Shown here: positions 19,119-24,412 of the stretch, piece by piece
Layout: each line of letters opens with the position of its first letter
Position numbering within the stretch: the first letter of the stretch is position 1
Origin: Pelomyxa schiedti
Taxonomy: Eukaryota > Protista > Evosea
Length of the DNA: 54,700 nt
Assembly (NCBI GenBank): GCA_020536535.1
Contig: JAHLWZ010000177.1
Coordinates: forward strand, 1-54,700
Reading direction: 5' to 3'
Notes under the pieces: model-generated
Databases searched by the model: none
What the model was told of the DNA's origin: nothing
The model's input: the letters and a program-made list of their open reading frames with translations, nothing else
Program-made: the position numbers and the translations under genes

Positions 19119-22100
19119 ATGTCCGCAACACAGAAGGCACAGTCAATGGACGGCAATCAGGCCGCCGCACACGTTGCGTACGCCCTCAGCGACGTTGCTT
19201 TCATTTTCCCCATCACTCCGTCGTCCCCAATGGGTGAACATGCCGACGCGTATGTTTTTACTTTTTTTTTGTTTTGTTTTGTGGTGTTTTTTTTTTTTTT
19301 TTTGCACTAGGTTTTTTATTTAATTTCATTTTATTTGGTTGTTGTTATATTTTTTAGTCGTTAGAGCTGAAGTTTTTTTGTGGTTGTTCTCTAACCTTGT
19401 TTTAAAGCTGGGCCGCACAAGGCCGACAGAACATCTTCGGTCAGAAGGTTGATGTGACCGAAATGCAGTCTGAGGCTGGTGCAGCAGGCGCTGTTCACGG
19501 TGGTTGCTCTGTTGGTTCTCTTGTTACCACCTACACTGCTTCTCAAGGTTAGTAGTACCTTAGTTTTCTTGTAGGTGGTTTATGTGCGATCAGGTTTGCT
19601 TTTGATGATTCCAAACATGTTCAAAATTGCTGGTGAACTTATGCCTTGCGTCTTCCACGTCACCGCACGAAGCGTTGCCGGTCAAGCTCTGTGCATTTTT
19701 GGCGACCACACCGATGTCATGGCTTGCAGGACCACTGGTTTTGCCATGCTCTCTTCCCACAGCGTACAAGAAGTTCACGACATGGCCCTTGTTTCCCACT
19801 TGTCATCACTCCGTTCATCTGTTCCCTTCCTTCACTTCTTCGATGGTTTCCGTACCAGCCACGAAATCCAGAAAATTTCCACCCTCCCCTATGAGGAGAT
19901 CAAGGCAATGACTCCCATGGACGCCATTCAGGTACGGATTACTTACTGTTTTTTAATTATTCACTCATAACTAGGCTCACCGCGAGAGAGGTCTGAACCC
20001 CAAGAAGCCACACCTCCGTGGTACATCTCAGGGACCTGATGTGTACTTCCAGAACTGTGAGCTCACAAACAAATTCTACAACCCAATTCCCGAAATGGTC
20101 AACCAAGCCATGCGCGAGTTGGAGGCCAAGACCGGTCGCTCCTACCACCTCTTCGACTACTACGGCTCTCAGACAGCTGACAGAGTTATCATTTTGATGG
20201 GTGCTGGAGCTCCAACTTGTGAGGAGGCTGCAGACTACCTCAACAGCAGAGGCGAGCAGGTTGGTGTTGTCAAGGTACACCTTTTCCGCCCCTGGTCGAG
20301 CGCTGCCATGCTCGCTGCTTTCCCCGCAACAGTCAAGAAGGTTACCGTACTTGAGCGTACCAAGGAGCCCGGGTCTCTTGGAGAGCCTCTCTACCTCGAT
20401 GTCTGCAGCGCCTTTGCTGAGCAATGTGCCCAGACTGGAGGACGCATGCCACGCATTGTTGGCGGTCGCTATGGTCTTGGGAGCAAGGAATTCAGCCCTG
20501 CCATGGCCCGTGCAGTCTTTGATAACATGAAACTTGATGCCCCCAGGAACCACTTCACAGTCGGTATTGTTGATGATGTTACCGGAACTTCGCTTGCTCT
20601 TCCTGAGGAGTTCGACTCTGTTCCACCCGGCACAACACAGTGCTTGTTCTGGGGTCTTGGCAGTGATGGTACTGTCGGAGCCAATCACGAGGCCATCAGG
20701 ATCATCGGTGATAACACACCTCTCCAAGTCCAGGGATACTTCTCTTACGACGCTCACAAGTCTGGAGGAGTTACCGTTTCTCACCTTCGATTCGGCGAGA
20801 AGGCCATCAAGTCCCAATACTTGGTAAACTCTCCCGCATTTCCTTATTTGTTCTCATCCCGGATAGATTAAGTACGCTGACTACGTTGCTTGCCACTTCA
20901 CAAACTACGTCTACAAGTACAAATTGTTGAAGAACCTCAAGCCAAACGGAATCTTTGTCCTCAACACTGCTTGGAGTGCTGCTGACCTTGAAACGCAACT
21001 CCCCGGAAGCCTCAAGCGCGCAATTGCCGAGAGGCACGCCCGTTTCTACATTGTCGATGCAGCTGCAATTGCTGAGAAGAATGGTCTGGGACGCAGAATT
21101 AACATGGTCATGCAAGCAGTCTTCTTCAAGCTTGCAAACGTCATTCCTTACGAGACTGCCATCGGCTACTTGAAGAAGGCCATTGCTCATGCTTACGGAT
21201 CAAAGGGACAAAACATTGTAGACATGAACAACAGGGTATCTCCCCTTTCCCCAAGCTTATTCCGATTGACCTTTATCAGTGTGTTGATGCCGCTACTGCT
21301 GGTCTCATTGAGGTACCCGTCCCCGCCAGCTGGGCCACAGCCCCACTTGAGACTGTGTCGAAGCCCTCTGCTCCCAAGTTCATCACCGATCTTCTTTGGC
21401 CATGCCTTGAGATGGAAGGCAACGCCCTCCCAGTGTCCGCGTTCGAGCCCGGAGGCATCATGCCAATGGGAACCACCAAGTTCGAAAAGAGAGGTATTGC
21501 GCCCGCTGTGCCCAGCTGGGACCTCAGCAAGTGCATGCAATGTAACGAGTGCTCTTTTGTCTGCCCTCACGCTGCTATTCGCCCATTCGTTCTTAATGCT
21601 GAGGAAGCTGCTGCCGCACCAAAGACCTTCGAGACTGTCCCAGCCAAGGGTGCTGATGGCATGAGCTACAGAATCCAAGTTTCCGCATACGACTGCACAG
21701 GTTGCGAGGTCTGCACACATGCTTGCCAGTTCGGAGCCCTCTCCATGAAGCCCGCTTCTGGTGAGCTCAAGGTCCAGGGAGACAACTGGGAGTACGCCAT
21801 GACTGTCTCAAACAAGGGCCATTTGTTCGATCGTAAGACACTTGTTGGAAGCCAGTTCCAGCAGCCACTGCTTGAGTTCAGCGGTGCTTGCGAGGGATGC
21901 AACGAGACTGGCTACGTCAAGCTTATGACCCAACTCTTCGGTGAGCGTATGATTATTGCCAACGCAACTGGATGCTCTTCAATCTGGGGAGGCACATGGG
22001 GCACAATCCCCTACACAGTCAACTCCAAGGGCCACGGACCAGCATGGGGCAACTCCTTGTTCGAGGATAACGCCGAGTACGGTTTTGGTATGGCCAAGGC

Positions 22101-24412
22101 TACTGCTGCAGCACGAGACAGGTTGCTGTCTGTTGCCAAGGCTTGTGTTGCCAAGGAGGGTGAGGGAGCTCCAAGCGCAGAGCTCAAGGCCCTCTTGACT
22201 CGCTGGATTGCCAGCTGGACAGATCCCGTTGTCTGCGAGCAAGTTCACGCCGCCGCTGTTACCCTGCTTGAGGCTGAGAAGGCCAAGGGTGGGTGCGTTG
22301 CCGAGGCTTACTCACTCCGCAACTTGTTCCCCAAGATTACCCAGTGGATTATTGGTGGTGATGGCTGGGCTTATGATATCGGCTATGGTGGACTTGACCA
22401 CGTTATTGCCTCTGGTGTTGATGTCAACGTAATCGTTTTGGATACCGAGATGTACTCCAACACAGGTGGCCAGAAGTCCAAGGCTACACCTCTTGGTGCT
22501 GTTGCCAAATTCGCTGCTGCCGGTTGCAGGCGAAACAAGAAGGACCTTGGTATGATCGCCATGCAGTATGGTGATGTCTACGTCGCCAGCTGCGCCATGC
22601 AAGCCGACTACGAGCAAACATTGAAGGCTTTGCAAGAGGCCGAGGCCTACCCCGGAGCATCTCTTATCATTTGTTACGCACCATGCCGCGAGCAAGGATT
22701 CGAAATCAGCAAGTCTCTTGAAGAATCCAAGGCTGCGGTTGACAGTGGCTATTGGAACTTGTACAGGTACAACCCTCAGCTCAAGGCACAGGGCCAGAAT
22801 CCATTCCAGCTCGATTCTCGCGATGTCTCTGTCGATCTCAAGACTTTCTTGGCAAGAGAAAACCGGTATGCCATGCTTATGAGGACTCAGAAGGATGTTG
22901 CCACCCAACTTCAGGACTCACTCAAGTCCCACACCACTGAGCGATTTGCAAACCTCAAGAAGCTTGCTTCCGACCTCAAGACAACAACACCCGCAACAGC
23001 AACAGCTGCAGCTGCCACACCAGCTCGCGGCCCTCTCCAGAAGGTCCCAATGAGACTCCGCCCTGCAGCTGAACGCGCCCATGACTTCAAGGAGGTTGCT
23101 CTTGGTTATTCTAAGGAGGAAGCCATGGAAGAGTCCAAGAGATGCCTTGGCTGCAAAAAGCCAATGTGTGTTGAGGGTTGCCCATGCGCCATCCCAATTC
23201 CCGATTACATTGCCCAAATCAAGGCCGGAAACTTCAATAAGGCCATGGAAATTGTAACCGCCCGCAACCCACTCATCTCTGTTTGCGGCCGTGTCTGCCC
23301 GCATTATTGTGAGGCCAAGTGCATCAGAGGAAAGAAGGGAGACCCAGTCTCTATTGAGTGGTTGAAACGCAGTGCTGGAGATTTCGGAGATGCCAAGCAC
23401 CTTGCTGCCCCACCAACAGGAAAGAAGGTCGCAATTGTCGGAAGTGGACCAGCTGGCCTCGTTGCTGCGTGGCACCTTGCCCTTGCAGGCCACAAGGTCG
23501 AGATCTTTGAGCAGAAGAGCGTTCCCGGAGGAATGATGGGACTCTGCATTCCTCCTTACCGTTTGCCCCGCGCCGACCTCAACAAGGATATTGACCGAAT
23601 CAAGGCTCTCGGAGTTGAGCTTCACCTCAACTCACCCATTAACGCAGCACACAGCGTTGATCACTTGCTCACACGCGATGGGTTCAATGCAGTCTTCCTT
23701 GCCATTGGTACCCTCAAGCCCAAGAAGCTCGGCGTGAATGGCGAGGACCTCCAGGGAGTTGAGCACGTCATTCCATTCTTGGAGAGCATCAACATCGATG
23801 GCCGAACCGCCATCGGCAAGAAGGTTGCAGTCGTTGGCGCCGGCTTCTCTGCCATGGATGCAGTCAGGTCAGCCAAGAGACTCGGATCAGATGCCTTTAT
23901 CGTCTACCGCCGCATGAAGGACCAGATGCCCGCTTCACCCGAGGTTTGTTCAATCCGCTTCCGCTCATTCACTCCGCGCCTAATCAAACAAACAGGAAGT
24001 CCACGAGGCTGAAGAGGAAGGCTGCGAGATGCACGTACTTGTCAACCCTGTAGAGATTCTCGGAGCCAACGGCAAGGTCACCGGAATCCGCCTCCAGCAG
24101 CAGAAGCTTGGAGCCCCAGACAGGAGCGGAAGGCCCGCACCCGAGGCCATCCCCGGCAGCGAGTTTGATGTGCCCTGCGACATGGTCATCCAGGCTATCT
24201 CCCAGGAACCCGAGGCCGACTTCTTCGGCACCACCGGCTTCAAGCTGTCCAAGTGGAACACGTTCGAGGTTGATGCCACCACCATGGCCACCAACAAGCC
24301 TGGAGTCTGGGCCGCCGGCGACGCCGTCACTGGCCCCAAGACCATCGTCGAGGGTGTTGGTGACACACTCAAGGCCGTCACTGCCATGCTGGAGTACCTC
24401 AAGACCCATTAA
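19119..24412 (+). CDS. PFO: Pyruvate:ferredoxin oxidoreductase fused to a C-terminal GltD/SudA/NfnL-like Fe-S flavoprotein (~1635 aa, 7 exons)
   Basis: [43 protein letters not shown], two CxxCxxCxxxC, [16 protein letters not shown]; then [43 protein letters not shown]. Introns 19250-19407, 19548-19593, 19932-19974, 20824-20866, 21236-21279, 23944-23995. Confidence 0.95.

Follow-up and report, generated by a model that had tools for sequence, protein, structure and literature searches.

Gene Pelo_2126 of the oxygen-avoiding archamoeba Pelomyxa schiedti encodes a complete pyruvate:ferredoxin oxidoreductase (PFO) joined through a short linker to a GltD-like iron-sulfur flavoprotein module. It lies on contig JAHLWZ010000177.1 (assembly GCA_020536535.1), within an analyzed stretch of 54,700 nucleotides referred to here as the window. 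There it occupies 19119..24412 (+), with start and stop both correct, and comprises 7 exons (4908 nt, 1635 aa; GenBank KAH3766013.1). The fusion is confirmed as a real single chain. We propose, with a probability of roughly 60%, that this chain is a cytosolic, non-bifurcating pyruvate:NADP+ oxidoreductase (PNO), convergently built, that reduces NADP+ directly. The gene is laid out as follows, where TPP is thiamine pyrophosphate:

19119..19249 (+): exon 1; PFO domain I begins, with the FPITP motif at residues 30-34
19408..19547 (+): exon 2; catalytic Glu motif QSE
19594..19931 (+): exon 3; POR_N, with the substrate Arg motif
19975..20823 (+): exon 4; PFOR_II, after which POR domain III begins
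20867..21235 (+): exon 5; remainder of domain III
21280..23943 (+): exon 6; 888 aa with PFO domains IV-VI, the linker and the initial 305 aa of the GltD-like module
21532..21726 (+): PFO domain V, 2x[4Fe-4S] ferredoxin-like, Cys694-Cys758
21889..22686 (+): PFO domain VI; proximal-cluster Cys813, 816, 841 and 1078, TPP-binding GDG at residue 969
22981..23028 (+): Ala/Thr/Pro linker, 16 aa, residues 1177-1192; its sequence varies among homologues, its length is roughly kept and its pLDDT is low
23143..23367 (+): GltD-type two-cluster domain; Cys1231, 1234, 1239, 1243, 1278, 1282, 1286 and 1290, and Lys1305 (23365-23367)
23440..23457 (+): FAD-binding GxGxxG motif
23836..23913 (+): second dinucleotide fold, GxGxxA + YRR, predicted NADP-type 2'-phosphate site
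23996..24412 (+): exon 7; C-terminal part of the FAD domain with a GD motif, stop TAA

A sequence-only reading of this DNA had placed the junction between the two halves within one exon, remote from any N gap, and had considered misassembly or contamination unlikely. Both statements are borne out. The junction falls inside exon 6, and the nearest run of N, at 26996, is about 4 kb away. All six introns are GT..AG and measure 43-158 nt each, and an exon-by-exon check found the translation of every exon exactly contained in KAH3766013.1. This full-length record (P0410) was used for the exon check, alignments, trees and local BLAST against fetched proteins. Transcripts that ended or were spliced at the linker would have spoken against a fusion; instead, two RNA contigs, X3 (4131 nt) and X4 (4154 nt), which start at 20157 or 20178 and reach 24449, each cross the linker as one spliced piece. 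Introns 4-6 are spliced out in these contigs and introns 1-3 in others. The contigs stem from two RNA runs of a single sample and indicate presence, not expression level. Third-position GC content is equal on either side of the linker (0.60). That the genome derives from single-cell amplification of a consortium with symbionts would favor a contaminant or an error of assembly or annotation, but the six spliced introns, the eukaryotic genes on either side (a Tem1/Spg1-like GTPase and VPS13) and the same fusion in three other genera and on a long-read contig argue the other way. With spliced RNA crossing the junction and the same fusion in homologues, we rejected this origin, whose probability we consider negligible.

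Residues 1-1176 form a complete PFO, catalytic motifs included, as had been read from the DNA on the strength of TPP motifs, a 2x[4Fe-4S] domain and third-cluster cysteines; all motifs cited in that reading are present in Pelo_2126. Database searches were run exon by exon. Pfam finds domains I-VI of single-chain PFO (TIGR02176) in order, and exon 6 matches EKR, two Fer4 domains, TPP_enzyme_C, Fer4_20 (E 2.7e-34) and Pyr_redox_2. Against TIGR02176, the Mastigamoeba balamuthi orthologue scores 1688 (cut-off, 911). The TPP, substrate and three-cluster residues are all kept. The first PFO motif, FPITP, is the same as in Entamoeba PFO, and the second ferredoxin motif ends in CQ rather than CP with every cysteine retained.

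Beyond the linker, which ends at 23028 and not near 23030 as first estimated, the chain continues into a module of 443 aa (the estimate had been about 455) with Fer4_20 and Pyr_redox_2 and the GltD/NfnL fold. At its N-terminus is a two-cluster domain and behind this an adrenodoxin-reductase-like FAD/NAD(P) domain, the arrangement that defines GltD-like modules in PMC8097209. The assignment to the GltD/SudA/NfnL type, with an FAD fold and a second dinucleotide fold, therefore stands. By sequence, the closest solved relatives are Thermotoga maritima NfnB (best PDB match, E 3.6e-67), NfnA, StnC and GltD. The cysteine spacing follows the NfnB pattern, and the position of T. maritima NfnB Glu117 is held by Lys1305, which aligns with K170 of 9BOV, a chain in register with StnC. 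Seven cysteines and the Lys-Arg pair are invariant across 19 aligned modules. With three clusters in the PFO half and two in the module, Pelo_2126 holds ligands for five [4Fe-4S] clusters in total, in agreement with the earlier count of about five. The equivalent of the flavin N5 Arg is kept as residue 1370. StnC, whose K170 is a ligand of the FAD-proximal cluster and whose FAD serves as a non-bifurcating NADP(H) site, keeps the same conserved Arg (PMC10482914), so this residue is not diagnostic of bifurcation.

The second dinucleotide fold appears to carry an NADP-type site. Its GxGxxA motif is joined by a basic pair, YRR, after the second strand, a combination that, from knowledge of the family, we take to mark a 2'-phosphate site. 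The earlier suggestion that this fold is NADP-linked gains further backing from the assayed sister proteins EhNO1/2 (PMC3164229). A role as glutamate synthase's small subunit (true GltD) was rejected: the M. balamuthi orthologue scores 187 against GOGAT_sm_gam, below the cut-off of 448, and no large subunit was found in the draft genome (52,367,397 bases in 5337 contigs), where PF01645 gave a single 34-residue match of 23.7 bits. Fer4_20 also occurs at four other loci (L026-L029; G000 C538, C869, C505 and C733), two of them dihydropyrimidine dehydrogenase (DPD)-like and two divergent GltD-like modules; none is on a PFO contig.

A model was made of a homologue with 76% identity (P0003, residues 610-1591, monomer, alignment of 114 rows). 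Its mean pLDDT is 90, and it matches PFOR with an rmsd of 2.4 and NfnL with a TM score of 0.88. Modeling thus indicates that both halves fold, while their relative placement is not fixed in the monomer. A model of exon 6 from 19 sequences reached a pTM of 0.41 with the ferredoxin domain unfolded. We found no solved structure in which one chain covers both PFO and GltD-like halves.

A search with a query spanning the junction returned 17 proteins at 487-975 bits, compared with at most 334 bits for all single-domain matches. One such query was the open frame 21103-24009, which includes extra intron-flanking codons; it scored only within exon 6 residues. Full-length proteins (1546-1635 aa) among the 17 come from environmental assemblies as well as from M. 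balamuthi (m51a1_g122), Mastigella eilhardi and Rhizomastix libera; overall, the fusion is kept in three genera, Mastigamoeba, Mastigella and Rhizomastix, and in roughly a dozen environmental relatives. Another of the 17, a stand-alone module from M. eilhardi (P0017), nests in the fused clade. It is extended N-terminally by about 100 aa, a stretch that starts like a targeting peptide, and is possibly organellar. Among the best 150 of 1.84 billion 50%-representatives, only 3 high-scoring matches span the junction, and none is a full-length PFO+GltD chain of a prokaryote or a fusion donor. Nor did either appear among the best 120 of a word-index search or the 80 best GTDB loci; no locus of these 80 spans the junction. 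Each list has an end, and divergent examples may lie beyond it. Among the matches listed, a full PFO and GltD on one chain were seen only in Archamoebae.

PFO-only copies coexist with the fusion in three lineages. The proteins compared are P0020/P0426 with P0432 (L040, L042, L043), P0139 with P0009, and P0125 with P0122. Each PFO-only copy shares 97-99% identity with the PFO half of its own fused counterpart, stops at the linker and has its own short tail; no GltD lies downstream of the stop in L040 or L042. Such copies point to a recent duplication plus truncation or to gene conversion; assembly chimeras are a possible alternative. A third type of C-terminal fusion to PFO is found in P0215 (1759 aa), in which an ODP beta-lactamase fold and a flavodoxin follow (flavodiiron-like).

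Separate trees of the two halves (LG+G4) both give Entamoeba proteins as sisters. In the PFO tree, a quick tree in which few other eukaryotic PFOs were sampled, the fused proteins group together (SH-aLRT 100) as sister to Entamoeba PFO (100), and the PNOs with a P450-reductase module fall outside. This agrees with the earlier claim of convergence, that the fusion is independent of the Euglena-type PNO. The tree of the module supports the fused clade at 97/98 or 94/96 and places Entamoeba NO1/NO2 as its sister (96/76 and 96/93); the next branch holds stand-alone proteins of Thermoplasmata type (84/83 and 93/86, not starred). Three stand-alone modules (P0295, P0296, P0146) nest in the fused clade and retain a DxNKR-like motif from the end of the linker, which is absent from Entamoeba and prokaryotic proteins. 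This favors one fusion in Archamoebae, most parsimoniously after the Entamoeba split, with repeated fissions later; fission in the Entamoeba lineage is a possible alternative. The parts would have been a PFO already present and a GltD-like gene, the latter with Thermoplasmata proteins among its closest prokaryotic relatives; no direction of transfer is implied.

Electron transfer from pyruvate to NADP+ is downhill by textbook potentials (about -500 mV to -320 mV), so no bifurcation is needed. In the reaction that we favor, pyruvate would be decarboxylated on TPP in the PFO half, acetyl-CoA would be made and single electrons would move along three [4Fe-4S] clusters, as PFO chemistry predicts. 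The tethered module would dock transiently on PFO domain V, the usual ferredoxin site, of its own chain or of its partner in the dimer. Electrons would then pass through the Cys4 cluster and the Cys3/Lys cluster to FAD, which would deliver a hydride to NADP+, as suggested by EhNO1/2 and StnC. EhNO1/2, which contain FAD together with two [4Fe-4S] clusters, are NADPH-linked reductases of ferredoxin, ferric iron, cystine and oxygen and have been assayed as ferredoxin-NADP+ reductases (PMC3164229); a module of this kind joined to PFO would carry electrons from pyruvate to NADP+.

Several observations weigh against this proposal. The literature searched contained no assay or biochemical characterization of the fused enzyme. 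In the P0003 model the linker is disordered (pLDDT <50), the pTM is 0.59 and the halves are not confidently docked, so the fixed internal wire from TPP through FAD to NADP+ imagined in the sequence-only reading is not borne out. In a Rhizomastix-related clade (P0013, P0014 and P0015; L039), the fusion, clusters and FAD fold are kept, while YRR is gone and the NADP domain is shortened; together with the near-identical PFO-only copies in several lineages, this means that the NADP site is not indispensable everywhere. As for a sink for NADPH, the two hydrogenases with CysJ domains that we checked (L030 and L031; G000 C594 and C579) have His in place of the 2'-phosphate Arg of cytochrome P450 reductase (CPR), which hints at a weaker NADP preference. 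A link from NADPH to H2 through these enzymes was dropped, as the motif gives it no support.

The same net reaction could be reached without a direct wire if the PFO half reduced soluble ferredoxin and the attached module then acted as a ferredoxin:NADP+ reductase. We regard this as the less likely course, though a serious one: the sister stand-alone enzyme EhNO1 uses ferredoxin, the linker is flexible with the halves undocked in the model, and fission has recurred (P0295, P0296 and P0146). Against it, the spacing from ENRY to the first cysteine motif of the module is conserved among homologues at 89-102 aa, and in DPD, according to PMC8097209, a 2x[4Fe-4S] domain is wired straight into a GltD module. 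It is improbable, in our estimate, that the module chiefly passes electrons to other acceptors (cystine, Fe3+, O2, flavins) or serves for NADPH-to-ferredoxin exchange, with redox defence taking precedence over NADPH supply. The reduction of O2, cystine and ferric iron by EhNO1/2, the loss of the NADP motif in one fused clade and the flavodiiron-like architecture of P0215 all lean that way, but the NADP-type site is intact in Pelo_2126 and most homologues, and the EhNO activities are themselves NADPH-linked.

Less probable still is a bifurcating, NfnL-like enzyme that would couple the oxidation of pyruvate and NADH to NADP+ reduction with a separate NfnS-like partner, an option raised in the sequence-only reading. 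NfnB is the best sequence match in the PDB and the flavin N5 Arg is retained; however, the proximal cluster has Lys1305 where NfnB has Glu, the StnC flavin with the same Lys is non-bifurcating and has the Arg as well (PMC10482914), and trees put the module outside the Glu-type clade. The draft genome has no PF10418 (DHODB_Fe-S_bind) match that would mark an NfnS/NfnA-type partner (FAD + [2Fe-2S]), which is weak evidence of absence. Because of the Lys at the FAD-proximal cluster, and with no such partner found, bifurcation is unlikely. Direct, non-bifurcating reduction of NADP+ thus remains our preferred reading. A wider form of it is more tentative, and we lean against it as a whole: an all-iron-sulfur second PNO, in which a ferredoxin-free path of five clusters, one ligated by Lys, would run from TPP to FAD, mixing of near-identical fused and unfused chains in the dimer would tune how pyruvate electrons are split between NADPH and ferredoxin, and EhNO1/2 would be the direct, unfused partner of Entamoeba PFO.

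The gene already bears the name PNO. GenBank lists KAH3766013.1 as 'pyruvate:NADP+ oxidoreductase [Pelomyxa schiedti]'. Table S2 of PMC8887013 gives Pelo_2126, with the same N-terminus, as the single PNO and predicts it to be cytosolic, PMC10579272 uses it as PNO in a cytosolic metabolic model, and PMC10711303 reports cytosolic PNO across Archamoebae. The searched passages of these three papers do not describe the C-terminal module, and the PFO+GltD fusion is not listed in the consulted parts of a 2026 PFOR review (PMC13768988) or of the GltD-like review PMC8097209. We found no published remark on an architecture without P450 reductase; Nyvltova 2015, outside the literature covered, may describe it. 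The earlier claim of novelty thus holds in that no characterization was found, and is reduced in that the gene had been named and modeled as PNO and prokaryotic analogues exist. Pelo_2126 is apparently a second PNO architecture under an existing name, the difference having gone unremarked. In the literature, eukaryotic PNO counts as a single fusion between PFO and a P450-reductase module (PMC6993867), and the archamoebal 'PNO' is listed under that name. The P. schiedti enzyme that bears it is another kind of machine, so tables of PNO presence and absence mix two origins.

The fusion also suggests a partner for EhNO1/2 of a human parasite. As these proteins are sister to the fused module and Entamoeba PFO is sister to the other half, a route from PFO through EhNO to NADPH becomes directly testable. 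EhNO1/2 have been reported to activate metronidazole. In addition, Pelo_2126 may be a ferredoxin-free source of NADPH from pyruvate and offers a compact one-gene system for studying a Lys-ligated [4Fe-4S] cluster.

Elsewhere in the window, the Tem1/Spg1-like GTPase gene, which has introns and was read by eye, lies immediately upstream of Pelo_2126 at 17990-18819 (+), and the VPS13-like gene is at 40703-48855 (+). The window further holds a PRKCSH-like repeat (12586-13332, -), a C2H2 zinc finger (29303-29930, +), a multi-zinc-knuckle protein (36003-36647, -) and a piece of a PALP-family enzyme (51907-52776, -).

Among known systems, the sister groups of both halves are found in Entamoeba histolytica. 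Its EhNO1/EhNO2 are 56-58% identical to the module and have the same Lys ligand and YRR; however, PFO and EhNO are separate genes there, consistent with the stand-alone GltD-family proteins noted in the sequence-only reading, and the EhNO N-termini are prokaryote-like and lack a linker remnant. StnC and NfnA of StnABC and NfnABC (PDB 8OH5, 9BOV, 9N5U) share the GltD-like NADP(H) module, the Lys at the FAD-proximal cluster and the position as plain NADP(H) terminal of an iron-sulfur chain. They are wired to a HydABC-like bifurcating core with another cluster arrangement, whereas the module of Pelo_2126 is joined to PFO and has Ile at the C114-equivalent. NfnB/NfnL/SudA (PDB 4YLF, 5JCA) have the same fold, cysteine spacing and FAD and NADP sites, but differ in their Glu ligand, obligate NfnS partner and bifurcation.

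Prokaryotes join oxoacid-oxidoreductase delta/beta subunits to GltD in por-type operons, with a TPP domain and GltD on one chain (P0153 of Ca. Limnocylindria, P0284 and ESM Atlas clusters), in P0153 with the same domain order. These enzymes are made of several subunits, and their GltD halves branch far away from the amoebal modules, that of P0153 with the Glu-type clade; we found no characterization of them in the literature searched. A two-gene operon of Ca. Limnocylindria encodes POR_N-PFOR_II-POR and then Fer4-Fer4-TPP-GltD, and another prokaryote has porC-porD-porA followed by GltD-porB. Two ESM Atlas clusters, of 126 and 131 bacterial proteins, combine TPP_enzyme_C with Pyr_redox_2 (leads only). 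Por-type operons at L131:752-5561 and L132:3951-8433, with GltD fused to beta or delta-beta, are candidates for bacterial oxoacid:NAD(P)+ oxidoreductases. Such independent prokaryotic fusions support the proposed function and lower the novelty, as the principle occurs outside Archamoebae too.

In the PNO of Euglena gracilis and Cryptosporidium, as in Pelo_2126, a homologous full-length PFO carries a flavoprotein at its C-terminus within a single chain. The overall reaction predicted and the name are also shared, but the module of the Euglena-type PNO is an FMN/FAD P450 reductase and that of Pelo_2126 a GltD-type 2x[4Fe-4S]/FAD protein. PNO has been defined as PFO fused to a P450-reductase domain, and eukaryotic PNO was recovered as one cluster arising from a single fusion (Lewis et al., PMC6993867). 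Pelo_2126 has no flavodoxin + FNR (P450-reductase) domain, as the sequence-only reading had noted, and for this reason does not belong to the Euglena-type family. We found no P450-reductase-type PNO in the genome of P. schiedti, where three CPR-type FAD domains all sit behind FeFe-hydrogenase domains. The idea that the published entry meant a separate CPR-type PNO was rejected, because the entry is Pelo_2126 and the CPR domains sit on hydrogenase loci. The archamoebal PFO-GltD protein is a second fusion, independent of the eukaryotic P450-reductase PNO, and it probably works like a PNO although it stands outside the Euglena-type family.

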